Of a stretch of DNA of 64,000 nucleotides, positions 4,966 to 58,831 are shown piece by piece (positions within the stretch are counted from its first letter, which is position 1; each line of letters starts with the position of its first letter). Below the pieces are notes generated by a model. The model was given only the letters and a program-made list of their open reading frames with translations. It was not told the DNA's origin and made no database searches. The stretch lies in NCBI GenBank assembly GCA_043228905.1, contig JBHGNT010000001.1, forward strand, positions 34,100,001 through 34,164,000. Direction: 5' to 3'. Made by a program: the position numbers and the translations under genes. Origin of the DNA: Azolla caroliniana (taxonomy: Eukaryota > Plantae > Polypodiophyta).

Positions 4966-5065
4966 NNNNNNNNNNNNNNNNNNNNNNNNNNNNNNNNNNN
5001 NNNNNNNNNNNNNNNNNNNNNNNNNNNNNNNNNNNNNNNNNNNNNNNNNNNNNNNNNNNNNNNNN
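4966..5065. other. Assembly gap (100 N)
   Basis: Run of 100 N, typical of a scaffolding placeholder of unknown true size. Confidence 0.99.
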
Positions 5066-8088: not shown

Positions 8089-11000
8089 ATGCCGGTTCAC
8101 AAATGTGGTAGCAGTGTTTTGTGTTTACATGAGCTCGGCAGCAGTGGCGGAACAGGTACGAGAGAAGATGATGCCAGTGATTTCGAGTATCTCGAAGTTG
8201 ATCCGAGTGGACGTTATGGACGGGTAATTATTCATCATTATCATCATACATCCTCGTCTTCTTTGTCAGCGTGTTTTTTCAATTATACCAATTAACTTTT
8301 AAGAGGTGGATTTTGTATGCTCATGCATCATGGTCTAACCTTGGAGTCCAATGTAAGCTTTCGCATACAATGATCCAGTTTTAAATTGTTTCGATATGCA
8401 CCTTCTTATTACACAAAATCATCTAACGTATAGTTAATATTTTATAAGCATCATGCTGTAGTGTTCTAAGCTTGAAGCCCAAGGCGATGGTCTCTCAATG
8501 TCTCATGAGACAGTCAATCATCATGTTTTGCAATTGAATATGAGATCTCTAATTGCTTGAAATCACATGCATATATATATCCATGCATGCATGTCTGTAG
8601 GTTATACATACATACATACATAGAGAGAGTTCATTTCAAGTTTAAATGCTCCTTCAATGAATGGCTTTCAAATTTTTAGTCTCTGCCATAAATCCAAAAT
8701 CCAATTCGTTGGTTACCTTATGTTGAAGAGTCATCAAAGATGTCTTCTTTGTTCATTGAATGGAGTTTTTTGATTGTTTATATCTCCAATCATGGTTGTT
8801 TCATTGAATGGAGTTTTTGATTTATCTTTTCCTATAGTAGAAGATATTTTCTTGTTCATTAGTTCTTGCTTTTTCATAGTTTTTCTTTGAATCGTAGAAG
8901 ATATATTCTTGTACATTAAATGGTGTGCTAATTGCTTTTCTTTGATGTTGGTTTGTATAGTACAAAGAAGTGCTGGGCAAAGGAGCCTTCAAGACTGTGT
9001 ATCCTAAAATAAATGTTTTGCATGTTGGGTTCATCCGTCCTATAAAATTTCAGTTATTTCTCCAAATGTTTGTGCCTTGACATGCTACTATAGGTATAGG
9101 GCTTTTGATCAAGAAGATGGAATTGAGGTTGCATGGAATCAAGTTCAAGGTGTCCTTTTACAAACGCCTGAGGACATGGACCGATTGTATTCAGAGGTGC
9201 ATTTACTAAGCACATTAAAGCACAAGAACATCATAAAGCTCTATCACTCGTGGGTAGATAAGACGTCGAATACAGTCAATTTTATTACAGAGATATTCAC
9301 CTCGGGAACACTAAGACAGTATGCTATGTTACCACCTCCCCATTTTTTTGCCAATTTTTCGATCTTGATGTTGTGTTGGTGATATGCCTATCCTCTGGTT
9401 GTCATTTTCATAAGGTATCGGAAAAGGCACAAGCACGTGGACATCAAAGCGGTCAAAAACTGGTCTCGTCAGATTCTTCGGGGTTTGCTTTACTTGCATA
9501 GTCATGACCCTCCCATAATTCATCGAGATTTGAAATGTGACAATATATTCATCAATGGCAATCAAGGGGAGGTCAAAATTGGAGATCTTGGTCTTGCGGC
9601 TATCCTACAACATGCCCATGCTCGAAGTGTCATAGGTGGGACTAATGTTTAGGGAAACTATTTGTCTTTACTAATCAACCAAATTTCCTTTCCATGGCTT
9701 AAAATACCTAAAAACAGATAACAAATCTATAGGAATGTTGGATTGGAATTTGATATAATTTCATCAGATTCTATTCCCACTATACATATCCTCAACAACT
9801 AGAGTTCAATAATTCAACTGAAGTTTTAGTAAATGGGAATACCTTTTTACCCAAACATTGAGTATTATTTGCTGCTCCATCACAAGCTCTTAATCTTTAC
9901 ATCAAAGAATTATAATTCTTTGTGATTGTCCATCCTTGGATGTATGTAGAATAAATTTTATCGTCCTGTTTTTCTCAACCATTTAAATGTTAGCCATTTT
10001 AATGTAATATCACTTGAATAAAGTCCACCACCATTACAATGTTTTCACTTTCTTGTATGTGCATAATTTGTCCAGGGACACCGGAGTTTATGGCACCAGA
10101 GCTCTATGAGGAGGAATACACAGAGTTGGTAGATGTCTATTCATTTGGAATGTGTCTCCTCGAGATGGTCACATCAGAATATCCATATAGCGAGTGCAGT
10201 AATGCTGCCCAAATTTACAAGAAAGTTATGATGGTGCGCGTGAACTATGTCTGAATCCACTAGATTTCAAATGCAGGCAAACATTTTAAGAATGGCTTTT
10301 CTGATCTTTCATCTGACCCTATTCAGAGTGGTTAATCATTTCAGGGGAAAAAACCAGAAGCTCTGAAGCAGATCAAGGATCCTGAATTATGTCAATTTAT
10401 CGAGAAATGTTTGGCTCCAGCCTCAGAGAGGCTTCCAGCGAGAGAGCTTTTGGTGGACCCTTTTCTTCAATGCGAGGGTAGTCGAGTATCATTAGAATCA
10501 TCACCACATTTAGGAAGGCGAATACGCATGGCCAATGGTACAGATGACAAAGCAGTTAGTAATGAGGAGGCACTTGGTGTATCTGCGACGGTGCAGATAA
10601 GTTACGTACTGAAGGAAACATTACCTGCTTATGTGTATGATGGTAGTGATGGATGCACCTGTTCGGCGGCATGTGACTCAAAAGTCAGCCAAACAGAAAG
10701 CACAGAGCCTTTACCGTTTCCTTACTGTAAAGAAGAGAGGGCCAGAAGTGTAGATTTCAGAGTAAATGGAAAATTAAGGGAAGATGACAATGTCTTTCTA
10801 AAATTGCAGATATCAGGATCGGAAGGTAACATGTTATTCTGACACTATTTGCGTTTTTCGCTTGTTTAAAAGAGTCAGTCACATAGAATCCAGTTAACAT
10901 GAAACAAGTTGTCTTGTCGATTCAATCCATTGAAACTAAAGATGTGTGTGTTTTTTAATTAACAAATCACAAAAACCTACAATTACGCTTTGAAGCAATC

Positions 11001-12609
11001 CAGTGTTATAGATGTTTATGTATGTATCCATTATCTGCAGTAGGAAAGCTGTTTTCATAACATAAAACACTCATGCTTAATTCGTGATGTGGGATTTTTA
11101 TCCATAGATATTTCCCCACAAAACTTGTATCTGTAGGTGTATCCTCACAAGACACATCCGTATCTGTATCCTGACTATCTGCTTGAGAGTACAAACAGTC
11201 TAACAAGTTTTGCAGTTGTGAAGTGAAAAATAAAACAATCGCATGCTTTGAATTTCTTCTTTGCCCCATTTTTGTGGCTCTGCAGATATATCAATCAGAT
11301 ATGTTTTAATGCAGGTCAGGTTCGTAACATTCATTTCCCATTTGATGTGGAAATAGACACAGCCATGTGTGTGGCAAGTGAGATGGTTGCTGAGTTGGAT
11401 CTAACAGACCAAGATGTTACTAAAATCGCAGAAATGATTGATGCAGCAATTTTGGCCCTTGTCCCAGAGTGGAAACCAGGTGTGGCTATTGATGAGACTT
11501 GCTGTGATGGTGAAGACGTAGACAATGAAGGCAATGATGGTATGGTTGGTGTCCATGATCCGATGAAAAATGTGCCGTCTGAAGGGACCATAGAAGAAAA
11601 TCCATCCTATTCTGCTAGAGAAGAAACTGTTTCTCCATCGCGAGTTGAGGGTCTCATGTATGGGAGATTTGAAGAAGTTACTTACCAATGTCATAGGTCT
11701 GAGATTCCTGCCCAGGAAGCTGAAGAATGCACTGCATCTAGTGAGGCAAGTGAAGTTTCCCATGATGCCGATTGGAGCTTGACAGATAGCATGAGTTCTC
11801 ATGAGTATCAAATACTATTACCAATGAATAAGCCAGCCTTCGAGGAATGCTCAGGTGTTATTACAAATACGAGGGAATCTACTACCACGGTTGCATTTAC
11901 CGAGCTTGTAGAGTCCAAATGGAAGGCTGGATATGCAAATTTTGTGCACAAGATATGGGAGGATATAGTCCATTTGCATCCTTGTGACAGGGGTGATGAT
12001 GATAATGGTGTGGCTAGAGTCTTCGGGCCATCTCTTCAGCCTGAGTGTTATCGGCAAGAAGGCAATGGTCAAGAACTTATGTCTAAACTTCCTGTCTTGC
12101 AACACGGCCTGAATGGTGATGATGATGATGTATCCCAAGAACTGGCTGAACTTGAAGTTCGTCATCAACAGGAGATGCAAGAGCTTCAGCGCAAGCATGA
12201 GGCAGCACGAACTGAAGTAAAGAACCGATGGCTGCAGAAGAAAAAGGTAAAATATGATGATGACGACCATCCTACATTGAATTGTGAATGTGGCAACAGA
12301 AGTGATATTCTAGAGAGCCTTGAAAATGGGCTCCAAAGTCTAAGGGTAGAAGAGGAAACTCCATGTGGTTTTCAAACGACTTTACCTTGTCATTATGGCT
12401 CTTTCAATAGCTCAATAACAAGTTTTGATGATCTCTCGAGCTTTGAACAAGAAACACCAACAAGTCGTGGAGTCTTCGAAGAATCCACGAATTTACTCTC
12501 GTCAGTTGAAACTGTATATTTCCCCTCAGCTGCCGGAGGCAAGTCAGAGGAGGGTCAGGATGCTATGGAGGTACTTCTATTTCTACAAAATTTTGGTATC
12601 CATAAGTGA
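8089..12609 (+). CDS. WNK: WNK (with-no-lysine) Ser/Thr kinase; exons 8089-8223, 8961-8998, 9094-9318, 9415-9635, 10076-10233, 10345-10825, 11315-12609. The 3' end is uncertain: a possible donor at 12571 would give a stop at ~12664
   Basis: [10 protein letters not shown]|[18 protein letters not shown] (catalytic Lys in subdomain I), VAWNQV (no Lys in subdomain II), [29 protein letters not shown], the post-kinase RNIHFPFD...VASEMVAEL domain, GRFEE motif and a C-terminal coiled coil. All introns are GT-AG and in phase. Confidence 0.96.
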
Positions 12610-17536: not shown

Positions 17537-20500
17537 ATGAGCCTTAACTTGAGCCCGACCCATAGCGATGATGATGATGATGATGATGATGAGGACGAAG
17601 ATGGTGAGGTTAATTCCTCTCATGACATAACCCTAAACCTTGAGAATGAACATGATGGTAGTACAACCAACACTCGTCACAGTTCTCTTGAGGCAGAAGC
17701 CAGCCATGTCTCTGGCATGCCCCATCACAGAAGAGAGGTTCGTATGCTCTCCATCAAACAACAAACCTAGCTCTTAATGTATATTTCTATGCTTCTTGTG
17801 TTTATTTTTATCAAAGGAAAAACACTAGTACATGAACATTTCTGGGTTTCTGAATCTATATTCTCTAAGAAAAATGTAGTTTTTTAAGAGATTTGCATTC
17901 AACTATGTTCCTCTATGAAAAGTTCTTCGTAGAATCATTTTATTTTGTAAAACAAACCAAAAACACAATTAATCTCATGGAATTTTGGTATGGACGATGC
18001 ATGTACAGGCTCTCTCGACGTATGTTATTCTTCAATTGGCGTACCAAAGCATTGGAGTTGTATATGGAGACGTGGGTACATCACCATTATATGTATTTGC
18101 AAGCACTTTCCCAGATGGTCTCCACCCGACAAGATACCAAACAGAGATTCTTGGATCTCTGTCTCTTATCATTTATACCCTAACTTTGATTCCTCTCATC
18201 AAATACATATGTGTGGTTCTATGGGCAAACGATAATGGAGATGGTATATACTCTGTTATCTTATGTAAATTTCCTTCACGAGAATTTCATAGTATTAAAG
18301 TTTTTTATGTGATTTCTAGGTGGGACGTTTGCACTATATTCGTTGATATGCCGTAGTGCAAATGTTAGTCTCCTACCGAATCAACAAATAGAAGATAGAG
18401 ACCTTTCGTTTTATAAACTCAAGATGCCTAGTCGGCAGTTGAAGAGAGCCATGAAGTTAAAGAATGCATTGGAGAAAAGCCATGGTGCAAAAACGGGTCT
18501 CCTTTTCATGGCTCTGTTGGGTACATGCATGGTTATTGGTGATGGCGTGCTTACACCGGCAATCTCAGGTTCAAGCTACATATACAAAATTTAATGACTG
18601 TGTTTTTCTACAGTTATAATAATAATAGCAATGCAAACTTATTGCATGTATTCTTAGGGGTTCTCACTAATGCAGGCCTCACAGCTTTCTGCAGTGCTTT
18701 CTGCAGTTTCAGGAATTCAGGCGGCCATATCTAGCCTACATCAAGGTAAGAATTTTGAATAAATTTTGCAAATAAGATGTGTTACCTAGAAGTTGGTTCC
18801 AAACAATTAATTTGGATTTTGCTATTAACACTTACGGTTTTGGATATCTCATCCTGCAGATGTTGTTGTCATAGTATCAATCCTCATCCTCATAGGATTG
18901 TTCTCAGTGCAAAGGTTTGGAACATCCAAAGTGGGAATTGTGTTTGCTCCTGTGGTTCTAACATGGTTCATCGCCATAGGCTCGATAGGTCTTTTTAACA
19001 TCTTCAAATACGACCACACGATATTTAAGGCATTCAACCCGATGTGTATCTATGACTATTTCCAGGGGAACTTGAGGAAGGGGTGGATCTCACTTGGAGG
19101 GATTGTGCTTTGCATAACAGGTCTCTATCAAGTCATCTAACTTTTGCTGGATGTAACTAACCGACACAATAAATTTATAGTAAACTTTTCTTTTCTGAAT
19201 TGTTTTGATGGTTGGTTTTTTGAGTGTAAACATGGGCAGCATATATTTGCATCTCAAAATTTGATGTTTGCTTCATTTTGATTGCAGGTGTAGAAGCCAT
19301 GTTTGCTGATCTTGGTCATTTTTCTGTTCCATCAATACAAGTAATAAAAAGAAAATCAATCTACACAGAAAAGGCCTTTCATTTTTTGGTTTAGGTTGTA
19401 AAAGATTCTTTCTATTGTTTTGTTGAATGCAGATTGCTTTTGGGTTTGTTGTTTACCCTTGTTGTCTTTTAGCTTATCTCGGACAAGCAGCATACCTTAT
19501 GAAGTGTCCTGAAGACGTCACTAATACATTTTACAGGTCCATCCCAGGTGGTTCATCATCATCATCATCATATCTTCACTACATCAATCTGATCTGTTAG
19601 ATGATTTACGAAGCTGGCATTCACACATGATCTTTTTCTTTTCTTTTCTCAGAACCTTTGTATTGGCCGATATTTGCTGTAGCAATAGCGGCTGCGGTTA
19701 TAGCTAGCCAAGCGATGGTGTCGGCCACGTTCTCGATTGTGAAGCAATCGATGGATCTGAGCTGTTTTCCAACAGTAAAAGTTGTTCATACATCAAGTAA
19801 AGTTGTAGGACAAGTGTATGTTCCCGAAGTGAACTGGGTGCTGATGATAGCTGCGATCGTAGTGACAGCAGCGTTCCAATCAACAAATAAGCTAGGGAAT
19901 GCATATGGTATGACATGTTTGCATCTATAGTTATATAATATGTTTGCACGTACCTATATCTGTATGATGCAGTTGCATCTTTTAATGTTAAGTTAAAGAT
20001 GGCATTTTTTGTAAATAGCAGCCGGGAAAATGCTAACTTTCCTCTTATTCAGGTATTGCCGTTGTTGGCGTGATGATTGTTACAACAAGCTTTATCACAC
20101 TGATCATGATCATGATTTGGCAAACCCCGTTGCCAGCGATCCTTGCCTTCTTGATGGTGTTTGGTTTCATAGACATGGTCTACTTCAGCTCCGTCTTGTT
20201 TAAATTTGTCCAGGGTGGATACCTACCATTAGCATTCTCGGTCGGGCTTCTATTCATCATGTATACATGGCACTATGGTGCCACATGGCGGCACAACTAT
20301 GAGTTGCAGCACCAGGTGTCGGAATCCGATGTGCAAGACCTCGTACGATGGACGGCCCGGATTGACGGGATTTCCTTGCTATATACCGAGCTGGCAAGTG
20401 GGATACCGTGCATCTTCTCTCACTCCGTGAAGAACCTCCCTGCCTTACATGCCGTTGTGGTTTTCGTGTGTGTGAAGTTCCTTCCCGTGACGACTGTTAT

Positions 20501-21011
20501 GGACAAGGAGCGGTTTCTCTTCTGTCGTGTTGGTCAAAGGGATATCCACATGTTCCGATGTGTGGCCAGGTATGGATACAAGGAAGTGCGCCAAGATAGT
20601 GATCACTTTGAGCTAGAGCTTCTACAAAATCTCGAAGAGTTTATCACTCAAGAAGTAGAGGAGTCACTAGGCGGACAAAGTGAAATGTGTAGGACAAACA
20701 CTAAGATTGTATTTGACAATGCTAGCCACGACATAATATCAACTTCTTTACATGACATGGGGGATGGTAGCCATATCTTGATGCAAGAATCCATGGAGGA
20801 GATAGCTTTCTTGAGAAGATGCAAGGCTGCAGGTGTTGTCTACTTGCTCGGGAACTCAGAGGTCAAAGCGAGAGAAGGTGCATCCGGTGTGAAGAAGGTG
20901 GTGGTGGACTACGTCTATGACATGTTGAGACGGAATTGTAGGAGACCTAGTGTGGCACTAATAATACCACATGAGAGGTTACTTGAAGTAGGCATGGTTT
21001 ATGATGTCTAA
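17537..21011 (+). CDS. HAK: KUP/HAK/KT potassium transporter, HAK5-like; exons 17537-17737, 18009-18243, 18320-18568, 18695-18745, 18860-19120, 19288-19340, 19433-19547, 19653-19907, 20053-21011
   Basis: [88 protein letters not shown] and the C-terminus [10 protein letters not shown]. The N-terminus carries poly-Asp from a (GAT)n repeat. Confidence 0.97.
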
Positions 21012-25938: not shown

Positions 25939-28164
25939 TCAGCTCCAACAGGAATAAATGTTTGAGAGAATCACATACGGTGCAGCATTTGTTGGATCTA
26001 TCCCGAACATCTTGTTTGCATAGTTCTCCCCATGTTCTACATCACCTTTGTACCTACATGCTCCAAGAAAAGCCATCAACAACTCACTTGTAGGTTGCAA
26101 TGATAAATTATTCATCAATATGTTGGCCTCATCCAGACAGCCTGCCCTTCCAAGGAGATCGACAATGCATACATAATGGTCTATGGATGGTGTAATATTG
26201 TGCCCATGAACCATACAAAGGAAGAGATACTGGCCTTCATCTATTAGACCAGCGTGGCTACAAGCATAGAGCATACATATGAAGGTCAAATCATCTGGGT
26301 AAATGCCAAGTTGTTGCATTTGATGAAACAACCTAAACACTACTAGACATTCACCATGTTGTGCACAGACTGCAATTATCACAGTCCATGACACCAGACC
26401 TCGATCAGGTAATTTGTAGAACATCGTTTTAGCATCATCCAGTCGTCCACATTTTCCATAGAAGTTAATCAGAGCTGTTCCAGTAACTGAATCAATCTCA
26501 GAGCCACACTCTAGAAATCCATGAAGCTCTTGTTCACCTCGACCTAAATCTAAGCACAATGTGCATGCATCCAATACGCAAAGGAACATGGTCCTATCAG
26601 GTTGTATTGCTTCCCTTTGCATCAACTCATAGAATGCCAAAGCCTTAACACCTTCACCATTCTCTACATAAACACCCATCATGGAAGTCCAAGAGACTAT
26701 ATTTCGTTCAGTCATACCTCGGAAAACTGTCTCTGCATTATGTATGCTACCACTATTCCCATACATACTGATGAGGGCATTCTGAACATTAACGTCCCTC
26801 TCATGGCCACCATTCACAATGCAGGAATGTAATTGTTTGCCCAGGGAAAATGTGGCCTCCTTTCTGCAGGCACCAAAAATGGAAACATATGTTACCTCAT
26901 TTGGAATCATCCCTTCCTGGAACATCTGGTGAAAAATCTGCACACCTTCCTCTACATGCCCATGAGAAGAGTACACCGTAATCATAGCAGTCCAAGATAT
27001 AACATTTTGCTCCAGCATTCTGGTAAACAAATCCAATGAATGCTGCAACTTACCACATTTGCCATACATATTAATCAGAGAACTTCCGATGTCCACATCC
27101 TTTAGAACCGGAGATGCCAAAATATGAACATGGATTTGCATACCTTCTATCAATGACCCATAGCTTGTACATGCATCTAGCACACAAACAAATGTGATTT
27201 TGTTCGGGTCCATTCCTTGTTGCTTCATGTTTTTGAAACTCTTAAGAGCTTCATATCCTTGACCTTCATAACTATATGCTGCAATGACTGCAGTCCATGT
27301 CACAACATCTTTCTCACGCATACTGTCAAAAACTCGAATTGCATCTTTCATACTACCACATTTAGCATACATATGAATGATAGAGTTTCCAATATGTAAT
27401 TCCGAGTGAAGCCCATTCATTATAATCAAGGAATGCAAAATCATTCCATGAATTTGCAATTTGTGCTTCGAACACGCCTCAAGAATAGTGATGAATGTCA
27501 CTGCATCGGGATTGATTCCTTTCTCTTGCATCTGGGAGAAAAGTTGCATTGCCTCATTGCCTTTTCCACACTTAGCATAACCTAAGATCAGCGTCGTCCA
27601 CGAAATCACATTATGATGGATCATCATCACAAACACCCTATGTGCATCCTCTAATGCATTTGATTTTACATACATATTAACCAAAGCATTGTTAACTACC
27701 ATATCAAGGTGACAGTCACTATCTATGATACATACATGCACGAGATGCCCTCTTTCTGGCAATGTTGCATGCCCACATATATCAATGATACTAATGAAGC
27801 TGACCCGGGTTGGCTTCACACAATTATTCTGCATTTGATGGAATAAATTGAAGACCTCTTTCTCTAACCCAAGCTGAGAGAAAACACGCATCATTACATT
27901 CCAGGTAACCACATCACGTTCCGGCATTTCTTCAAACACCCACCTTGCATCCTCCGGATGACCATATTTTCCATACATATTGATGAGGGCAGTCCCTATG
28001 CGAACATCAGTCTTCAAATCATTTTGCATTATGTACGCATGGATCGACATAACATCATGTGAGCATGTTGTCAAAGAAAGCAAGTAAACAAATGAGACAT
28101 TATCATCTCTGAATGCGGAAAATGTTCTTCTAATGCTCCACATTTGATGTTGTACATCTAGCAA
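25939..28164 (-). CDS. PLS-class pentatricopeptide repeat protein ending in E1/partial E2, no DYW domain (candidate organellar RNA-editing specificity factor). Start uncertain: first in-frame ATG ~28143, or a 5' intron
   Basis: Intronless ~740-aa ORF of repeated P-L-S motifs (ALINMYGKCG, DVVTWTAVI, PNKITFVCVLDAC), then LYACSHAGLIDEG, DHYVCIVDLLGRAG, LGACR and APYVILSNIY followed by a stop. Confidence 0.95.
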   Translation of the reverse strand: MLDVQHQMWSIRRTFSAFRDDNVSFVYLLSLTTCSHDVMSIHAYIMQNDLKTDVRIGTALINMYGKYGHPEDARWVFEEMPERDVVTWNVMMRVFSQLGLEKEVFNLFHQMQNNCVKPTRVSFISIIDICGHATLPERGHLVHVCIIDSDCHLDMVVNNALVNMYVKSNALEDAHRVFVMMIHHNVISWTTLILGYAKCGKGNEAMQLFSQMQEKGINPDAVTFITILEACSKHKLQIHGMILHSLIIMNGLHSELHIGNSIIHMYAKCGSMKDAIRVFDSMREKDVVTWTAVIAAYSYEGQGYEALKSFKNMKQQGMDPNKITFVCVLDACTSYGSLIEGMQIHVHILASPVLKDVDIGSSLINMYGKCGKLQHSLDLFTRMLEQNVISWTAMITVYSSHGHVEEGVQIFHQMFQEGMIPNEVTYVSIFGACRKEATFSLGKQLHSCIVNGGHERDVNVQNALISMYGNSGSIHNAETVFRGMTERNIVSWTSMMGVYVENGEGVKALAFYELMQREAIQPDRTMFLCVLDACTLCLDLGRGEQELHGFLECGSEIDSVTGTALINFYGKCGRLDDAKTMFYKLPDRGLVSWTVIIAVCAQHGECLVVFRLFHQMQQLGIYPDDLTFICMLYACSHAGLIDEGQYLFLCMVHGHNITPSIDHYVCIVDLLGRAGCLDEANILMNNLSLQPTSELLMAFLGACRYKGDVEHGENYANKMFGIDPTNAAPYVILSNIYSCWS

Positions 28165-30931: not shown

Positions 30932-31387
30932 ATGGCAGGAGGAGATGGTGAAGGGCAGGCCAAGAGCTTGAAATGGAGGAGCATAGGGGATGTTCCAGCA
31001 GGGCCCATCTCCATGGACGGCCACGATCTTTGCTTCAGGAACGCTGCAGATCTTCTGGAAGCCATGGGCCTCCCTGGTGGTCTCCTCCCCCTCGAGAATG
31101 TCATCGATTGCGGCTTCGACAAGGCATCGGGCGCAATGTGGATACGCCAGAAGAAGAAGACCCAACATTACTTCCGTCGCATCGGCCGCATGGTCAGCTA
31201 TGACACTGAGATACGTGCCCAAATTGGGGACCACCGCCTCCACTCCATCTCAGGTGTGAAAGCCAAGGAGTTCCTTGTTTGGACGCCTATTTTCGATGTG
31301 TCGGCTATCGAAGATAAGATCAAGTTTCGAACCTATGGTGGTATTTTGAGAACCTTCTGTGCAGATGCATTTGCTAGGGGTGAGTGA
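30932..31387 (+). CDS. DUF538-family protein, paralog 1
   Basis: LLEAMGLPGGLLPL, HYFRRIGRMVSYDTEI, SGVKAKEFLVW and RTF..AF match the DUF538 pattern; single exon. Confidence 0.92.
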   Translation: MAGGDGEGQAKSLKWRSIGDVPAGPISMDGHDLCFRNAADLLEAMGLPGGLLPLENVIDCGFDKASGAMWIRQKKKTQHYFRRIGRMVSYDTEIRAQIGDHRLHSISGVKAKEFLVWTPIFDVSAIEDKIKFRTYGGILRTFCADAFARGE

Positions 31388-34291: not shown

Positions 34292-34738
34292 ATGGCTCTA
34301 GAGGAATGTGAGTTTGAGCTTGGAGGAGAACTTAAACCCAAAACATTTATGGGCAAAGACTATAGTCATGATTTCTCGTTCGACAATGCTGTTGATCTTC
34401 TCGAATCAATGGGCCTTCCTGGCGGCCTCCTAGCGATGGAGGATGTGCTTGATTGTAGCTTCAACAAGGAGTCAGGCATATTGTGGATACGACAAAAGGA
34501 GAAGACCCAACATTACTTCCGTCGCATTGGACGCATGGTGAGCTTTGACACTGAGATACATGTGCGTGTCGCACATCGTCGTCTTCATGGGCTCTCGGGT
34601 GTGAAAGCGAAGGAGCTCTTCTTGTGGGCACCCGTTAGTGATGTCTTGGTCTTGGACGATGGGGAGCGGCTCAAGTTTAGGAGCTATGGTGGCATCACAA
34701 AGACCTTCCCCACAAAAGCTTTTGCTAGGGGGGAGTGA
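34292..34738 (+). CDS. DUF538-family protein, paralog 2
   Basis: LLESMGLPGGLL, HYFRRIGRMVSFDTEI, SGVKAKELFLW; same AFARGE* ending as paralog 1. Confidence 0.92.
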   Translation: MALEECEFELGGELKPKTFMGKDYSHDFSFDNAVDLLESMGLPGGLLAMEDVLDCSFNKESGILWIRQKEKTQHYFRRIGRMVSFDTEIHVRVAHRRLHGLSGVKAKELFLWAPVSDVLVLDDGERLKFRSYGGITKTFPTKAFARGE

Positions 34739-37179: not shown

Positions 37180-39245
37180 AAAACATTCGCAAATAAAAAT
37201 ATTCATCAAAACATAATTCATCTAATGGCCACTATCTGCTGCATGCTGGATAATCGTGCCCAAGTTGATGAAATTGATAAAAAGGATTATCAGAAATTTC
37301 TTATGGGGGGGCACATAGGAAAAACAAGCTTGTGCAAAGGTTGCTTGGACCGCGCTTATAAAAAGGAAAAGTGCAAGGGGGGTGGGATTGATAGATCCGT
37401 GGTGCAAACGAAGGCATTGCTAGGCAAACTAGTGGTCAGGAGCCTACAACCTCTTGAGGCACCTTGGAAAGTTCTATGGCGACGTAGATGGAAGATGTGG
37501 TTGCCAAGACAAGGAGGACGTTGGCCAAGCAACCCATTTTGGGGCTTTGTGCCAAAAATGAGACCCAAATATTGGGGAAGTATGCAGAGTCTTTGTGCTA
37601 TTGGAATTATGAAAGCATGGCAAGAAATCAGAAAGGGGATCACATGTAGGTGGAGAAATGATGCATATGGGCGGATGTACATGCCAATTGTGTGGAACCC
37701 ATTGATTAGAGATGTGGATGGGCTGATGATAGGACAAAAAGCCGGTTTCAAATGGGTTGAGTTAATCAATGCCCAAGGGAATGCATTAGTGGAATGGGAG
37801 AGGTTTTTGTCCAATGAGGTGGGCACTCAAAAGGCTAGAATATGGAGAATAAGCAGGGGTAAAGGCATGCTCAAGAGAATTACATATGTCATTGCATGCT
37901 ACAGGAATACTTTGGAAAAGGAAGAAGTAACAACCTCTGAAATTGCGTGGACAGGTCTTATAGATATTGAAAATTGTTTAATTGGCATTAAGGGAATGAA
38001 AGTAGAATCAAATGAGGTATGCTACTACAAACTAGAGCACGGAATGGTAAGAGTTGAGCAACCAACCTTTCAAAGAGAAAGGCCGATTAGGCCAATCGCA
38101 AAAAATGGCAAGAATATGATTATTGACCCTAAGCCAAGGGAGATCACACTGGCGACCGTGTGTTGGCCTATAGAAGGGCATTTGGATCTACTATCATGGG
38201 ACCCAACGATGTATTTTTGGAGAACTCAAGGACAAACTGATGGGGAAAAGCTTGTTCAAATTTTCAGGTATAACACGAAGATTGGGAGGCAAATTATTCT
38301 AGAACAAGAACACGACAAGATTGCGGCAAAGAAATTTTGGATACTGGAGGGCATTAGTGAAATGAGACTAGATAAATTTTGGAAAATGATATGGCATGAC
38401 AGATATGACTGCAAGATAATGATGTGCTTATGGCTTATTGCACATAGAGCCTTGTCGGTAGGGATGTGGGGTAAAGGCCCCAATGTAGACCCTAGATGTA
38501 TTGCATGTGGACAGATAGAAAGAATTTCCCATTGTCTATGGGAATGTCGCGAGGTAGTGGCTATATGGGGAAGGACACTACGTTTGCTTTGCCTTGCCTC
38601 TAGTTCGTTCACCCTCTGTACGATAGAACATGCGATGCTCAGTACAGAGGAGAGAATGGCATTGTTCGGTTGATCACTGACAACAGGGTACCTACATCTT
38701 GTGCACAGAATCAAAAACTTGGAGATTTTTGGATGTTGCTTGCCCCCATTACTATATGGTGTATATGGACAACAAGGTGTATCAGGGTATTTTCAGCACA
38801 CAAACACCCTCCAGCTGAATCGATTAAGCTAATCTGACACACATTAATAACTACACTTAGAGCTCAATATGTGCGGATTGATGGTATTGATGATGCTGCT
38901 GAACTAATGAGGCTGAATTTTCGAAAGTGATGGCGTACTACACCGATGGCCACAACAAATGGAATGGATATACTATGGAAGTATGAAGTACCCAGATGGT
39001 TTTCCCCCTCCCATTCGTTGAACGAGGGGCGTGAAAGACATGGCATGTGGGATAGTGAATGTAGGTGAAGTGTATGAAAGGATGGTTAGAGACATATGTG
39101 AAAGTGTAAGATAAATCAACGAGATCTCTTATGTAGGATAGGATAGTCTTGGCACGGCCTACCCGAGAAAGGGATCGAGTTTGTGTATATTTTAACTAAT
39201 GGAGTATATTCTTTTTTGGAAAAAAAAAAAAACATTCGCAAATAA
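37180..39245 (+). mobile_element. 5'-truncated, degenerate L1-type LINE (post-RT region and zf-RVT) with poly(A) tail and 17-bp TSD
   Basis: Frameshifted RNFLWGG..AKVAW..K..GG..TKALLGK motif. zf-RVT-like FWKMIW..KIMMCLWLIAHRAL..CIACGQIERISHCLWEC..W. A-tail at 39220-39232. TSD AAAACATTCGCAAATAA at 37180-37196 and 39229-39245. Confidence 0.92.
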
Positions 39246-39653
39246 GAGGCAACGCACCACCCCCACAATGTCTTGCTATTTACTTACATGGGCAAACCTA
39301 GAGATATGATTAAATGTACTTGTATATAAGTAAATATTGGTTGATTTTAGGATCTACACAAAATGCAACTTCATTTTGGTTATAAAAAATGTATGTAGCT
39401 CTTCTACTTCAAAGAGATCTACATCATCATGAAGTGGGACCTTCAATCTCAATCATTTCCATATGTATATATGGCTTCCTACTTCTCAATTGCTCAATAT
39501 TATGAAGAGTTGGGCATTGTAACATGTGCAATATTCAATACTATGCAACTATGGCTCTTTTTGGCCTACCAAAAAGCGCGCGAGGTATGTCAACTTAGGG
39601 TCATCGTGACCTTCCTCATATTGTCACGCACCATCTTCTTACAATTCAATCAA

Positions 39654-39842
39654 TTCAATCTCGACAATGATAATTAACAATCATTTTAGAGCAACATATT
39701 ATGTCCACATGGCACACTTGAATCTTGATAGTGATAATTAACAATAATTTTAGAGCAACATATTATGCCCACATGGCACACTTCAATCTTGACAGCGATA
39801 ATTAACAATCATTTTAGAGCAACATATTATACCCACATGGCA
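39654..39842. repeat. Tandem repeat, ~3 x 64 bp
   Basis: TT(C/G)AATCT.GA.A..GATAATTAACAAT.ATTTTAGAGCAACATATTAT..CCACATGGCA at 39654, 39718 and 39782. Confidence 0.92.
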
Positions 39843-40878: not shown

Positions 40879-43800
40879 ATGGAAACTGTGATGAATCATG
40901 GGCAGTTGTTATATTCACTTGGCCAGCCATGGACCACATTCACACATACTAACCACCCATTGGGAAGGAAAAGGATTCATCTCCGGAGACGATCTAGATT
41001 ACACTGGGCATTTCAACCACAAACAAGAGGTAGATAAAACAAAATGTCATCCCAATTCACACATTTACGCACTTGGGATGTCATTACACAATGTCTATGT
41101 TTATGTTTATTCAAGTACATGCATTTGCATTTCTATATGTATAAAGATACACACTATAATTTCACTTGGTCTTTCTACCACGCCAGGTATAGGTATAGGT
41201 ATAGGTATAGGTATATCTATAGCTATAGGCGTACGTGTACATGTACATGTGTGTATGCATATGCGAATGTGTGTAACGTATGCATGTGTGAATGTGTATG
41301 TGTATGTGTATGCATATTAAAGGAATAGCATGACTTGGATCATGTAGTTTTTGCAAGAGATGCATTGAAGGTTGCAGAGGAAGAAGATGAATCAGAAGCA
41401 CAACCTGAGGGGCCAATAAAGAAGTTTGTTAAGTTCCCAGGAACTAACAAGTTGAAAGTCACAAGCCAGCCTCCAAAAGTCAACAAAATAGTCTTTGTGG
41501 CAGGAGCGACTGGAAAGGTTGGCTCAAGAACTGTAAGGTAAGTGAAGTATGTAGGAATGTTGATATTATTTTGTGACTTTTCACCGGCATTGAGGTTTTC
41601 CCATCAGTAATATAAAATACTATATCACTAGAAAAATATTTGTTTTTGGGCATGTCTTACTAGCACAACAAAGTGGTTTTGATCAACAATTCACATCTCA
41701 TTCAGAGAACTCCTGAAGTTAGGCTTCCAAGTCCGTGCAAGTGCAAGGAATGTAGAGAAAGCTGAGACTTTGTTTCAGGTTAGTATGCACTCCAAATTTT
41801 TAAAACACTCCAGTACTTCACTTGAACATAAACAGGCCATTTGCAAATAACCTCATCTCTGTCTTTTATTTAGGATGTTTTGGAGAACACCACTATAGAA
41901 GCACAACCAGAAGAAACAAACTCTTTCACTCTCTTTTCGGTAATTTATTCTTATTCGATGTATTTTGAATCTTTGCAGCAAATTTATTTCAATGGAAGCG
42001 TAAAATCAATACCATTCCATGCTGTAATATAAATGCAGCCAGCAAAGCTTTTTGCTTTTCTTAAGCCCAAATCTGTGAAGCCACAGTTGGATTTAGTGGA
42101 ATGTGATTTGGAGGTGGTTGAAAGCATTGCACCTGCTTTAGGAAATGCTGGTGTTGTAGTGTGTTGTATTGGTGCAAGTGAGAAAGAGATACTTGATGTT
42201 ACCGGTCCTTACCGTATTGACTACAAAGCTACAGAGAATTTGATAAATGCTGGTAATCATGAAACATGATTTTCCCCTATAACGCATGTCGAATTAGGAT
42301 TCATTTATTTTGTTGGCTTTTATTGTCTTAACATATCCTTCACATGTGTATTCTAATTCCTTTTTAAGGTCTACAAGTTTTCTTTGTACAGCTTCTGCAG
42401 CTGAAGTAAATCATTTTGTGCTATTGACTTCTTTGGGAACCCAAAAATTTGGCTTTCCAGCAGCGGTGTTGAAGTTAGTCCATTTTGAACTTTAACCCAA
42501 AATGTTCAATTTCACTCAATAAATATCTGGTGTTTTTAACCCATTGAAAAACTGATTTGTGGTGCAGCCTTTTTTGGGGAGTTCTTCTATGGAAAGCCAA
42601 GGCTGAAAAGGCTCTGGTTGAAAGTGGACTTCCATACACAGTGAGTAATCTGCATTGTAATGTGCTCTCTCAATCAACATTGTACACATACCTTGAAATC
42701 TCAACTCAAAATACCAAAATTGTACATCCAGATTGTTCGGCCAGGTGGCATGGAGCGACCCACTGATTCATATAAAGAGACTCACAACCTCACTCTTGCA
42801 GAGGCTGATAAGCTGTTTGGTGGTCAAGTATCTAATCTACAGGTTCTTGACTTTGAACTCCAAACCACGATGAACAAATCAGAATTAATGTTCCTCATGC
42901 TCATGCTCCAATTGATAATTGAATCATGTGGCTGCGCTTAGCAAGCATAAACAAATCAGAATTAATGTTTCTCATACTCATGCTCCCATTGATAATTGAA
43001 TCAGGTGGCTGAGCTTATAGCAAGCATTGTTGAGAATCCAGATATCTCAAGAGACAAGATTGTTGAAGTCGTTGCTGAGACAACAGCTCCATTGAGACCC
43101 ATCAGAGAGTTACTAGAAGAAATTCCAACTTATGGTGCACAAACAGTTCCAATTTCTCAAAGCAAAAAGCCTCGTCCCACCATATCCAGAAATAGAAAAG
43201 AGGTAAAAATTAAAGTGTCACTCATTTAGATGTTCCTATGTCAAAAACATCACACACATGAATGAGGATAAAAAATGCTTCCTAATTTGTAATTCAGGAA
43301 AGTAAGAGGCTGAACAATGTGAATGAAGACGAAAAGCTTGAGTTGAAGGCATTACGGGAAAGATATGAGGTTGAGATTGAAGCCGCAAAAGAAAGGGAGA
43401 ATGAGGCAAAAGCTGCACTTGCAGAGAAAGCTGAATTGGAAGATAAAGCAGCAGATATCCGAGCAAAGGCAGAAGCTGCTGCTTTGGCTGCAAAGCAAGC
43501 TAAGGCTCTTGAGGCGGCCATTCTAGCAGCAGCTAGAAAAGGCAATGTGTGAGTTCATTAAGGCTAATATTTCCCATTCATATTTATGCGTCATGCATGC
43601 ACCCATAAGATTGTTTGGTCACAATATTACTTTCATTGCCTCTCAATGCAGACTTTCAGATGAGGAAAAGCAAAAGATACTGGAATCAGTGAAAATTGAA
43701 AGTCTGCAAAATGTTTCAAGTAGTAAAGAGTTGAAAGAAGAATCTAAAAATATATTCTCCTTCTTCAAGCTGCCAACACTAGGCACTGAAACCGTTGCTG

Positions 43801-46800
43801 ATGACGGTGGATCAAATGATTCACAACCATCAGCAATCGAAACTGAGGAACAAGTTGAAAAACTAGCAGTGGCAAAGATTGTAGAGAAGAAACAAGCAGA
43901 GGAAACAAAGAAGCAAGATGCAGCAAAACTTGCCAGGCTGGAAACTGGGAAAAAGGAAGAACTAGATAAGTCAGAAATTGAAGCAAGGGATTTGAAGGAG
44001 CAAAATGCTAAGAGGGAGGAAGAAGAGCAAAAAGCAGCAGATCAGAAAAAGAAAGATGAGGAAGTGGAGAAGAAGGCTACACTCACAGCAGAAAAGGCAG
44101 CAGAAGCTGCTAAGGTAGAGAAAGATAACCAAACAAAGAAGCAATCTTATGCAGTACTATCACCATATATTGGGTAATCTCTACTTCATGCGTCTAAATC
44201 ATTTATATTGACTTGAATAATAGGTATTAATGATTTCTCTGAATAGGTTTGAAACAATAGTATTCTTCTTTGAGATGCCAAGTGTTCTGTCGTTTATGTT
44301 CGCAAAAGATAGTATGCAATACAATTTGTTCAAAATAAACCAAGGAATCCATCTTAGATTTGTTGATGTATACATATTCATATTCATCATATTCTTGCAT
44401 GATGCATGTAAGTTGCCTGGGCTCAAGCCATACAGGAGACGAATTGCAAGCAAGAAAAAAACCTGGCAGAAATGGTGAGAGTTTAGCATTGTATAATCTT
44501 CAATTTTCCTGGCTTGTTTGTATAGTAACTTGTAGTGCGAAGAAAAATTCTATTAAGGGCATACCTTGCAATCGAAGTCACTTCTAAATCACAATCATTA
44601 TCATTGAGCTCTACCATTTTAATGGGAGCCAGCAAGGACATAAAGTTTTCAGATCCTAGATTGACATGCATAGAGTTTCAGCTCTACCGTCATTATGGGA
44701 GTCTGCAATGTCATCCTCTATACCTCTAGTACTCTCTTTCTACATGTTTTAGATTAAATTCTTCATCTACATATATCCTCATTATGAAAAATCAGAATTT
44801 CATTTTCATGTCTCATCCATCAAAATTTTCTCATTCGGTTAATGATTTTCAAGATGTTTACTGAAAGAATGAATTCTCTGTTAAATCGAATGAATTCTCT
44901 CATTTGGTTTCCCAAGATGTTTACTGAAAGAAAATTACTCTTACACAGGTTTCCTGGACTGAAGCCACCCCGTCCTCCAACACCAAGCCCCCCTGCATCA
45001 AAAAGTGAACAGGTGACTGAGCCAAAAGTCATAGAACAAACTGAACAAAAGGATGAATCCATATCACCAGTTAAGAACACCAAGGAAGATAAGGAGATCA
45101 TAACAGGATCAATAGAAGACATAGAAGCAAGGAAATTGTTGACACAAGAGATTGCAACAAGGGAAGAAGAAGCGTTGGCAAAGGCACTGGAAGCAACTTC
45201 GTTTGTTTGGCCTTGGCAGAAACCTAAACCTCTTGAGGAAGAAAAAGAAGAAGTCGCACCTTCGCCGTCAGCTTCACCTTCGGAAAATGTGACTGATATA
45301 CTTCCATCCTGGTCAAGGCCCCTTTCACCTTACACACAGTATGTATTATCCTCGGAAAACAATTTTTTTACATAGCTGGAAAAGAAGATTGTCAATGCAT
45401 GTCTATGTAACTTGGCCTTCTTTTTTTCCATTGAAGAGCAATTAAGAATTCTCAGCTTGTTTGAAATGGTTGTTCCTAGGTTTCCAGATCTCAAGCCACC
45501 AAGTTCACCATCTCCAGCTGTACAGGTAGTGGAAGCACTGCCAAGATTATCATCATCTACTTCTCTGTCTCCATATGCAGGGTATGTTTTAATCCTTACA
45601 GAATTTATTTATTTTTCTCATGGATTGTATATAGCTCATGTCTACATTGTTACTGATAGAAAGCAATGAAAGCAATGAAAACTATTTCTTTCCATTGCAG
45701 ATTCCTAATCCAAACGCACCCACACCTCCACCCCCTTCAAAGAGCATCTCATGTTAGAATACATACCCATGTCATCATATTGAGCATTTTTTTGATGTGG
45801 TGGAAGCCTTCCAGTCCAGTCCATGTCCTGTTTTTATATGTAATGTACTACTGTCAATTGGCGAGGCATCCTGAGCACCACTTTGCATACTCATGAAAGC
45901 CAAAACAAATTCCCACACTCTAATGACCATAATACAAATGCCAACTGTCTCAATAACCTAATTTGAACTATTTGTGGCAAAGAGAAGCCTCTAATGCCAT
46001 AATCTCGTGGCATAGTATCCTTTCTGTGTATCGTCCAAGAAATCATTGTCATAAAGGACTCTAATATTCCAGCTCTACCAAATCGTCAACACCTTTACAT
46101 CCTCTCTTTATTTCCTCCACTTCAATGTTCAAATTCCAATGCACCACATCGCATTCTGCATACCATATTAGGATGAAGAGCCATAAACCAGACACCTGTA
46201 TATTAGTTACTGATAACTGCCCCTGATTTTGCATATCCATGATTTAATCCATCTTCCGCATCTACATAGAAATCTTGTCTAAGAATGGCTAATCCGGGTG
46301 TTTGTAATCTTCATTTAGCCAGACTTCTTTGTAAGATAACTTGTAGCACGAACAAAAACTCTATAAGTTAGAACTATCTCTAACTCCATAGGTAGATACT
46401 TATTGTTATAGATTTAACATTAGAATGGTAACGTATGTCATTAGGGATATACGGATTTGAACCATAGACATTCTCAGTCATTCAGAGAACATACCTTCCA
46501 ATCAGAGTCACATCTAGATCAAAATCATCATACTTGAGCTCTATCTTTTTTATGGGAGCTGGCAGGGCGATAAAGTTTTCAAATCCTAGATTGACATGTA
46601 TAAAGTTTCATTATCATTCAACTCTACCTTTTTTATGGGAGTCCGCAATTTTATCCTCAACACCTCTAGTACTCTCTGTTTCTGTGTGATTAAGACTAAA
46701 ATCTTCATCTACACACATCTACATTATGAAAAATAAAGGTAGATTATAAGAGTTTCATTTCCATGTCTCATCCATCTAAATTCTCTCATTCGGTTAATGA

Positions 46801-47672
46801 TTTTTGGAATGGTTTCCGAAGACGTTTACTGAAAGAAAATTACTCTTACACAGGTTTCCTGGACTGAAGCCACCCCGTCCTCCAACACCAAGCCCCCCTG
46901 CATCAAAAAGTGAACAGGTGTATGAGCCAAAAGTCATAGAACAAACTGAACAGAAGGATGAATTCATATCACCAGTTAAGAACACCAAGGAAGATAAGGA
47001 GAGCATACCAGGATCAATAGAAGACCTAGAAGCAAGGAAATTGTTGATAAAAGAGGTTGCAGCGAGGGAAGAAGAAGCGCTGGCAAAGGCAATGGCAGCA
47101 ACTTCTTTTGTTTGGCCTTGGCAGAAACCTAAACCTCTCGAGGAAGAAAAAGAAGAAGACGCACCTTCACCTGCACCTTCACCTTCGGAAAATGTGACTG
47201 ATATACTTCCATCATGTTCAAGGCCTCTTTCACCTTACACGCAGTACGTAGAATCCACAGAAAACAATTATTTTTAGATTGCTGAAAGGGAATTCACGTT
47301 TACATGCTCTTTTTTCTTCTTGTTTTCCATTGAAGGGCGATTAAGAAATTCCCAACTTTTTTGAAATGGTTGTGCTTAGGTTTCCCGATCTCAAGCCCCC
47401 AAGTTCACCAAGATCTTCTCCACCTGCCAAGCAAGAGCTTGAAAAAATGGTAGTGGAAGCACTGCCAAGCTCATCATCATCTACTCCTCTGTCCCCCTAT
47501 GCAGGGTAAGTTTCAGGATTTGAAGCCTTTCTTGTTTTTCTCCTGTATTGTATAGCTGATGTAGCAACAATATTGTTGATAGAAAGCAATGAGAACTCTT
47601 ATTTTGTTTTGCAGATTTCCTGATCTGAAGCCACCCATACCTCCTACCCCTTCAAAGTGTTTGTCATCTTAA
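40879..47672 (+). CDS. TIC62: TIC62 (chloroplast NAD(P)-binding Rossmann/SDR protein with FNR-binding repeats). Exons 40879-41029, 41348-41537, 41706-41778, 41874-41939, 42039-42252, 42392-42473, 42568-42640, 42732-42842, 43005-43202, 43298-43548, 43652-44173, 44949-45338, 45480-45581, [frameshifted 45701-~45757], 46854-47243, 47380-47505, 47615-47672
   Basis: Transit-peptide-like exon 1. Core motifs VFVAGATGKVGSRTVRELLKLGF, CCIGASEKEILDVTGPYRIDY, LNLFWGVL, IVRPGGMERPTDSYKETHN and FGGQVSNLQVAEL. C-terminal LSPYxx-FPxLKPPxxPxP repeats. Confidence 0.94.
41185..41316. repeat. (GGTATA)n and (TG/TA) microsatellite in TIC62 intron 1
   Basis: Direct inspection. Confidence 0.85.
44490..47672 (+). 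repeat. Intragenic tandem duplication of the TIC62 3' module (copy 1 ~44490-45757, copy 2 ~46303-47672)
   Basis: The 390-bp exons 44949-45338 and 46854-47243 are highly similar. Flanking introns and the following two exons also align. Confidence 0.95.
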
Positions 47673-49483
47673 GGTGATTACAATTATCATGACATGAGAT
47701 GAGTATTTTGTAGGCTCTGCTCTAAGGTGTGCCATGGCAAATGAGTCATAGGAAGACACCTATTGTTTGACATGTAAAACTCTAAATTCTTCCTCTTCTA
47801 TTCTAGGCTTGTGCTGTGCTGAATGAAGAGTGTCTGATTTAATCTATTGGTGTTCTTGCAATAAGCATGATGCTATCTGAAGATTGTATACCATTTGTCT
47901 CAACATTCTTCGCAAGCTTCACTGTCTGTTTTCTTATGTGGATTTTCGTTAACAAATTGGTATTTGGAGATCAATAACTAGTTCCACCTTTGGGCTGCGA
48001 AGGCTGCACAAAATTGATTGCAAATGCAACAAAAATCAGCACCATATATTTGTGTTTAGTCCCTCGATTTCGGTATTCTGATCAATCAAAATCAAATTTG
48101 CTGCAGGTAATCAATCCAGCAATCAAAATATCTGTGTGTAATCAAATTCATGTCATATATCATTCATAACCTGATGATGTGTGAATCTGAAAAAAAGGAG
48201 AACATTCATAACGTACAAAATGTGGGATCCTAGACATGTCCTTCGAATTTCTATGATCTCATCCATCGGACAATAAATAGAACATATACGAGAGAACCTA
48301 CCTACGGATCCATTAAGAGCTTTGGGTGACAAATCGTCGCCTTTTTGTTTGGTGATTCCTTTTGTTTCCCACTCCGGCCAATACGTTATCAACCATAGTT
48401 TTTCCCTACATTGAATCTGGTTTTAGAGAGTTTTTCCCTACATTGAAATAAATATAGCAAATTTTGAGCTTTACCAAGTAGACTATCATGGCAATCATTT
48501 GCAAATTTTGATTCGTTGGAGTCTATGATATGATGTATAAAGGTGTTGTTTTCACTTTGTACTTTAGGATGTATTTCCTCTGAGGGATAATGGGCAAGCC
48601 TAGATCTTTGATGAGTATTGTAATCACTGCAATAACAATTGGTGTTGTTAGTTTGCAAGAAAACTATTTATCCAACATCAAATTTCCTTGGTCCTAACAA
48701 TTATCTAACACGTTTCAATCAAGTGGATGACTATTACTGCCTCAATTGTCCATAGTATGAGACAAGCACAAAATTACGCGTAATTGTGAAAGCATCGGAA
48801 AACAAAGACTTGTATACATCTCGTCAACCCAAGAAATGGACGGAGAAAGATCTTCTCTCTCCATTGATGAAATAGGACTTGAACGAATTGTCAACATTAA
48901 ATGTGTGCGTGTTGGGATTGGCTTTTTCGACTCTATCATCTTGCATTCTAGAGTTACAAATCTCTTTTTTGCACAATAATAAGGCAAATGAGTCTCTACA
49001 TCTTTTACAAACTCAATCAAGCAAGGGACTATGTACAATCAACCTGGTTGTTGATGGATAAAACGCTTGGATCTCCTCACACATGAACACAACACAATGA
49101 ATGCATGCATACGTACAAATCATGGTATTGGTACTACCAACAAGTCTCTACATGTTTTACAGACTTGATGAGGTAGGATCGATGAGGTGTGACCAACGTG
49201 GTTGCTAATGGATAGAGGCATTTGGATCGACCCTCTCATTTGGAATGACAGCAACATAACCCCATGAGTGCATACAATGCATAGCATAACATGATGAAAA
49301 TTATTATGTCTTGTGTGTTAATATGTAGACACGCTATTGATCGGGATATCAAAGGGTACTGATTTATGCGCCTTTTGAAAGCCCCCTGACACTTCTATCA
49401 AATGGATCTTCGCCCATGAGTGAGTGAATTCTCCACGCTGGTTCATTCTTTCGCAGACACAACTACTACGGAATTTACTGCAA

Positions 49484-58653: not shown

Positions 58654-58831
58654 TATTCTAAGGGATTGATTGAAGAAGCCAACTTTCCTTTACTGAGGAC
58701 CGTCAAATGGTCCAAAGCGCACATCCATTTTAGATTGAGATATTCTAAGGGATTGATTGAAGAAGCCAACTTTTCTTTACCGAGGACCGTCAAATGGTCC
58801 AAAATGCACATCCATTTTAGATTGAGATATT
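58654..58831. repeat. Tandem duplication, 2 x 87 bp
   Basis: TATTCTAAGGGATTGATTGAAGAAGCCAAC... at 58654 and 58741. Confidence 0.93.

Follow-up and report, generated by a model that had tools for sequence, protein, structure and literature searches.

The window analysed here is a 64,000-nucleotide (nt) stretch of the fern Azolla caroliniana (GenBank assembly GCA_043228905.1, contig JBHGNT010000001.1, positions 34,100,001 to 34,164,000, forward strand). It contains a gene for TIC62, whose tandem Ser/Pro-rich C-terminal motifs are candidate docking sites for ferredoxin-NADP+ reductase (FNR). Here, we describe the tail of this gene, in which the last three exons (A, B and T) have been duplicated in tandem. 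The duplication is real, old and lineage-specific, and it sits on an exon layout that is family-wide.

The gene was modelled with 16 exons on the plus strand, from ATG 40879 to TAA 47670-47672, with the frame open throughout (41360 likewise fits as acceptor of exon 2). About 95 residues lie N-terminal to the Rossmann domain; GATGKVG is found within exon 2, and ERPTDSYKETH matches the group I signature E-R-P/A-T-D-x-Ar-K/G-E-T-H (PMC1847441). Database queries were single exons or protein ids, and the joined, spliced model was compared by local scripts. A single Rossmann exon matched PF13460 (E=0.00095, under the curated cut-off), and the best matches of the same exon were TIC62 proteins carrying PF13460, led by that of Adiantum capillus-veneris (Rossmann domain identity, 80% over 262 columns). 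In a Rossmann-domain tree, the gene grouped with Adiantum and Ceratopteris (support 94/89, below the tool's starred level). Four exon sizes in this region (73, 82, 73 and 111 nt) are those of Marchantia and Capsella. Signature, similarity search and tree place this leptosporangiate fern gene in group I of TIC62; a preliminary description made from the letters alone had already proposed its TIC62 identity. It resembles other group I members (PMC1847441; Arabidopsis At3g18890; pea Tic62 peptide, PDB 3MHP) in Rossmann domain, signature and C-terminal Ser/Pro repeats, and differs from TIC62 of angiosperms in its length (998 versus about 640 amino acids), long charged linker, FVWPWQ segments and five motifs that all carry Phe.

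Two further features were seen in the Rossmann region. A 77-nt tandem duplication of the exon 9 acceptor region (42870-43027) has AT for AG in its first copy, while its second provides the model acceptor, 43005. The exon at 41874-41939, inside the Rossmann insertion, is symmetric (phase 0); its counterpart is phase 0-0, with another length, in Marchantia, Diphasiastrum and Closterium, and phase 0-1 in Capsella and Buddleja.

The tail begins with exon 11 (E0), itself symmetric (phase 2-2), followed by A1, B1, T1, A2, B2 and T2, and these six have AG/GT borders. Because E0 ends in phase 2 and the lengths of A1, B1, A2 and B2 (recomputed; see the table) are multiples of three, each motif is cut by an intron at one same place. 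The internal exons are thus frame-neutral with equal flanking phases, as cassette exons are. Five repeats are recognisable, each with one to four departures from the group I consensus S-P-Y-x2-Y-x-D/E-L-K-P-P-S/T/A-S/T-P-S/T-P (PMC1847441), always including Tyr to Phe; 93 of 93 angiosperm-type motifs keep the Tyr at this site.

Self-comparison returned one duplication (44560-45756 versus 46490-47671; 78% identity, E=0.0), with a spacing of 1899-1955 nt and homology beginning near 44490/46300. The flanking introns were duplicated along with the exons, as in a tandem duplication. By alignment, T1 is one T short relative to T2 and out of frame, and copy 2 ends properly at its TAA. The long path through both copies is predicted to encode 998 amino acids with five motifs and two FVWPWQ segments, single-module paths 826-834 amino acids with three motifs, and splicing into T1 872 amino acids with two whole motifs and an unrelated tail. 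The spacer between the copies gave no match above shuffles that would tell its origin. Two candidate features of the tail were rejected. A relic exon at 44411-44473, within the intron that follows E0 (63 nt, phase 2-2, LPGLKPY motif half, phase-2 GT, AA acceptor), has no RNA contig, and in a related contig (L007, below) the stretch is broken by a 5-nt deletion and lacks the GT; acceptors at 45664 and 45673 would restore the former frame of T1, and neither has RNA.

Transcripts, age and upkeep of the duplication

RNA from four runs of four studies, in every case as assembled contigs, was compared with the window over 43150-48100. The joints found were E0 to A, A1 to B1, B1 to A, A2 to B2 and B2 to T2. 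Run X2 matches the window almost perfectly and holds both A1-specific and A2-specific contigs (0 differences each; depths 29.3 and 28.2, a weak measure); its A1-B1 and A2-B2 joints have 60-nt sides over diagnostic bases, and B2-T2 is present too. The B1-A joint (45581 to 46854), one of those put forward in the preliminary description, is listed in X1, X19 and X3, and in X2 it was derived from bin depths (8.18 computed, 8.19 seen). T1 and the spacer drew zero contigs in all four runs, so the proposed B1-T1 junction (45581 to 45701) did not appear. Neither a B1-T2 nor an E0-B joint is among the contigs of the four runs, and the same holds for a diagnostic A1-B2 joint (45338 to 47380): the lone A1-B2 row, in X19, has a side of just 24 nt, and its contig, which shows 7 differences and 6 gap letters, therefore comes from another gene version. 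From these joints, the A1- and A2-specific contigs and the lack of anything on T1, it follows that both copies are used; the RNA contigs back a single path, E0-A1-B1-A2-B2-T2, as the main one, with T1 skipped. The expected five-motif product is thereby borne out.

At 43748-43895, X1, X19 and X3 each contain two gene versions of similar depth (0 and 11 differences per 148 nt), and these samples look like hybrids or polyploids with this genome and a relative. Two depth anomalies were set aside: the contig depth in X1, which hinted at three A copies in relatives, is explained by 3' bias (depth is unreliable), and a depth of 63.5 on B2 in X2 fits a short variant branch and not extra copies.

Two metagenome contigs from ENA, L007 and L008, come from related genomes. 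L008 corresponds to copy 1, with B1, the spacer and a T1 that lacks the T as in the window and carries a 1-nt insertion besides. In the introns downstream of A, 65 of 241 positions (27%) differ between the copies and 7 of 253 (3%) between window copy 1 and L008 (P=1e-15), about twelvefold after correction; overall, introns differ by 25-28% between copies. Because the paralogous introns are so much more diverged, the duplication is much older than the split from the L008 lineage. With T1 already broken in that relative, the proposal of an expansion caught in progress is not supported. T1 and T2 differ like intron DNA (14/57), and B1 and B2 less so (11/102; P=0.04).

The A exons behave otherwise. 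Paralogues differ at 26 of 390 positions and orthologues at 20 of 390 (P=0.45), so that paralogous A exons are no more diverged than orthologous ones while their flanks are, the pattern of concerted evolution, as judged against a low-coverage contig. Synonymous sites of A1 and A2 differ less than the introns of the two copies (10/89 versus 65/241; P=0.002), and orthologous synonymous sites differ more than orthologous introns (9/90 versus 7/253; P=0.016). Among window copies 1 and 2, L007 and L008, the A exons are mosaic, with every pair 5-7% apart. We infer that A1 and A2 have probably been homogenised by gene conversion.

Exon layout of TIC62 across green plants

Intron positions were obtained by mapping proteins exactly onto their genes (Closterium, Marchantia, Diphasiastrum, Capsella and Buddleja); for other ferns, protein units served as the sole guide. 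A phase-2 intron at the same place as here interrupts 3/3 motifs in Marchantia, 3/3 in Diphasiastrum, 5/5 in Buddleja and 4/4 in Capsella, where intron positions are otherwise as here too. In Closterium it splits three tandem motifs, and a fourth motif-like stretch, in the last exon, is intronless. The motif-splitting layout is therefore general in TIC62, shared by a freshwater alga and flowering plants alike, and is not special to the Azolla gene; the preliminary description had itself named such generality as grounds for giving up its proposal. No description of this layout was found in the literature searched, which had few subscription papers. Balsera et al. (2007) report three repeats, four in Arabidopsis, and mention neither introns nor splicing (PMC1847441).

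This layout explains why plants differ in their number of repeats (2 to 6 motifs per long TIC62 protein among those compared). Adiantum and one Ceratopteris form hold three motifs in the order A-B-T, so the five-motif state here is derived, and three is the ancestral number, as had been supposed. The Azolla gene resembles TIC62 of Adiantum and Ceratopteris richardii in having a long A with WPW, a B of about 40 amino acids and a T, and in the Phe of some motifs; it differs in that A, B and T were duplicated as one unit, so that one terminal exon is now dead, and in having lost the WPW with which the other fern proteins end. Ceratopteris KP509_1Z144700 has its own B-exon duplication, with annotated three- and four-motif forms. 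Potato M1AEX8 is annotated without three repeat exons present in isoform X1, and Trinity isoforms i1 and i2 of Psilotum differ by one 142-amino-acid unit. These forms make splice variation plausible in the family; they are annotations, and regulation is not implied. Some annotated Ceratopteris forms (P0118, P0171-P0177) end directly after a motif half. Marchantia P0126 has an exact tail-block repeat relative to P0006 (1393 versus 1143 amino acids), which is strain variation or an older assembly error.

The motif has been said to be restricted to vascular plants (PMC1847441; 2017 review, PMC5296341). It is present in Marchantia, Calypogeia, Sphagnum and Closterium (P0006, P0016, P0122, P0187, P0085; L001, L005), with perfect consensus matches among the motifs of the last three genera and, wherever mapped, the phase-2 intron within it. 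On sequence, then, the restriction is contradicted by liverworts, Sphagnum and an alga, and absence from Physcomitrella looks like loss. Outside flowering plants, an F-x-WPW segment stands 20-60 residues ahead of most motifs and often at the protein end (P0001, P0003, P0006, P0016, P0085, P0122); it occurs in none of the 28 angiosperm-type proteins compared. The Azolla protein has it in A1 and A2. It is possibly a membrane contact.

Interpretation and competing explanations

We consider it probable that the locus encodes a fixed five-motif TIC62, derived from an old A-B-T duplication with T1 skipped, and is not a dial set by splicing. The phase-2 intron in each motif makes the tail a chain of frame-neutral exons, and the last three were duplicated in an ancestor of the lineage. 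T1 is skipped on the main path, probably for want of a downstream donor and poly(A) signal: past the stop, resemblance to copy 2 is lost within about 35 nt (not significant alone), the real 3' untranslated region (UTR) reaches at least 47834, and a simple scan of the spacer found neither a poly(A)-like hexamer nor a donor-like site. T1 has decayed like intron DNA, and gene conversion may keep the two A exons alike. The main mRNA takes the number of motifs from three to five and that of FVWPWQ segments from one to two, and the likely effect, judging from work on angiosperms (PMC7108012, PMC7984839), is a fixed rise in the number of FNR molecules tethered per TIC62 at the membrane. Tethering of FNR by Tic62 and TROL has been linked to cyclic electron flow at the dark-to-light transition (PMC7984839).

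Several points weigh against this explanation. The contigs were filtered and lose rare forms, so missing isoforms are not proof of absence; the RNA status of the runs is a tool's guess, although the joints sit at GT..AG introns. The contigs do not separate E0-A1 from E0-A2 (44173 to 46854), since A1 and A2 start with 67 identical nt. T1 keeps a canonical-looking acceptor. L007 and L008 are metagenome contigs of about 1.5x that are possibly chimeric within A, which weakens the argument for conversion, and L007 (positions 1-1733) holds a single module with three motifs: E0, a copy-1-like intron, A, and then copy-2-like B, T and introns. Finally, binding of FNR by the five motifs of this fern, with Phe for the angiosperm Tyr and up to three more departures, is a prediction by analogy.

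The module of L007 also bears on the first alternative, that repeat number is polymorphic at the DNA level, with unequal crossing-over between the near-identical A regions giving relatives or alleles with three or five motifs. We rate this as a tentative possibility. The L007 structure, either a genuine contraction through unequal crossing-over or a chimera made in assembly, speaks for it, as do the mosaic A exons and the joining of an A2-like end to B1 in three RNA runs. Against it, two ENA proteins (P0143, P0197) complement each other as mosaics of A1 and A2 as found in the window, and the L007 cluster includes both A1-like and A2-like interiors, which suggests low-coverage assembly chimeras. 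Such polymorphism is, in any case, compatible with a fixed five-motif gene in this genome.

The preliminary description had favoured regulated skipping of the symmetric exons, with three-, four- and five-motif isoforms tuning FNR valency. All internal tail exons are indeed frame-neutral, whole repeat exons distinguish the Ceratopteris, potato and Psilotum forms above, and an E0-A2 joint stays compatible with the contigs. However, no diagnostic skip junction was seen in any run, the long diagnostic sides in X2 pair A1 with B1 and A2 with B2 at similar depths, and the one A1-B2 row belongs to another gene version; isoforms of other plants are annotations. Tuning by splicing at this locus is accordingly unlikely. 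A broader version, in which the tether is a module carried on exons that predates land plants, is paired with F-x-WPW outside flowering plants, and has its number of FNR sites per TIC62 set by regulated skipping as well as duplication in plants including this fern, is doubtful as a whole; its ancient general layout was observed in five genomes, and regulated skipping is its conjectural part.

A third possibility is that B1 is spliced to T1 and the product is cleared by nonsense-mediated decay, T1 being a poison exon that sets the TIC62 level. The T1 acceptor is intact, lies only 119 nt past B1 and is retained in L008, and use of T1 would give a frameshift and early stop. With no T1 contig in four runs, and with T1 and its intron both 25% diverged from copy 2 and showing no visible constraint, we find this very improbable. 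That an artefact of assembly or of alleles explains the duplication, or that only one copy is ever used, deserves hardly any credence: haplotype stacking is conceivable where sampled relatives carry two gene versions, but the introns of the copies differ far beyond allelic level, an independent DNA contig (L008) contains copy 1 with T1 and spacer, and RNA from four studies has B1-A joints plus both A-specific sequences, so that the artefact is largely refuted.

Comparable systems are known. In a poorly conserved part of grass CENP-C, an exon pair was repeatedly duplicated in tandem, was also lost and possibly underwent gene conversion (Talbert et al. 2004, PMC549713), likewise a tandem exon duplication; it is another protein, and here the unit took in the terminal exon, with introns inside the binding motif. 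In human genes, symmetric exons duplicated in tandem within the gene have given rise to low-complexity, motif-bearing regions of disordered modules (Schad et al. 2013, PMC3632108), a pattern like that of this tail in a fern TIC62. TROL (At4g01050) has the same motif for membrane recruitment of FNR as TIC62 (PMC7108012), whereas it is an integral membrane, rhodanese-like protein with one motif, and a Rossmann domain marks the present gene. As an exon duplication specific to one lineage, the locus itself is ordinary; the extension of the motif beyond vascular plants is the more useful result. The natural series of three versus five motifs (here) and three versus four (Ceratopteris) lets the effect of site number be asked.

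Feature coordinates and the rest of the window

Table 1. Features of the TIC62 gene and its duplicated tail (positions in the window)
Feature	Position	Strand	Basis or remarks
TIC62 exon 1 (start codon, putative transit peptide)	40879..41029	+	open model
Exons 2-9, NAD(P)-binding Rossmann domain	41348..43202	+	model, similarity search, signature
Exons 2-5	41348-41537, 41706-41778, 41874-41939, 42039-42252	+	
Exons 6-9	42392-42473, 42568-42640, 42732-42842, 43005-43202	+	
Exon 10, charged Ala-rich helical linker	43298..43548	+	open model; both junctions found in 4 RNA runs
Exon 11 (E0), 522 nt, phase 2-2, first half of motif 1 at its end	43652..44173	+	model and RNA
Duplicated unit, copy 1 (pre-A intron, A1, B1, T1 and introns)	44490..45790	+	self-comparison; borders approximate
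Exon A1, 390 nt, phase 2-2 (motif 1 second half, FVWPWQ, motif 2 first half)	44949..45338	+	sequence and RNA
Exon B1, 102 nt, phase 2-2	45480..45581	+	sequence; B1-A joint in RNA
T1, dead terminal-exon copy	45701..45757	+	1-nt deletion; 14/57 mismatches to T2; no RNA contig
Spacer	45790..46300	.	about 500 nt, no detectable similarity to either flank; kept in L008
Duplicated unit, copy 2	46300..47710	+	self-comparison; borders approximate
Exon A2, 390 nt, phase 2-2	46854..47243	+	93% identity to A1, first 67 nt the same
Exon B2, 126 nt, phase 2-2	47380..47505	+	sequence and RNA
Terminal exon T2	47615..47834	+	coding through TAA 47670-47672; transcribed 3' UTR reaches at least 47834

Upstream of TIC62 lie three tandem copies of 64 nt (39651-39842) and a 482-amino-acid open reading frame (37225-38673, plus strand) that by eye resembles the terminal part of a non-LTR retroelement. 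Two related single-exon genes (30932-31387 and 34292-34738, plus strand) share 71% identity, and the second matches PF04398 (DUF538) proteins. Also by eye, putative exons of a WNK-like kinase (9077-12609, plus strand), putative exons of a KUP/HAK potassium transporter (17985-21011, plus strand) and a 741-amino-acid open reading frame of apparent PPR type (25939-28164, minus strand) were noted. Near-identical short tandem duplications occur at 126-723 (302 nt at 99.7%), 2028-2217 (98 nt) and 58654-58831 (91 nt), some of them perhaps assembly features, as a 100-N gap at 4966-5065 perhaps is.

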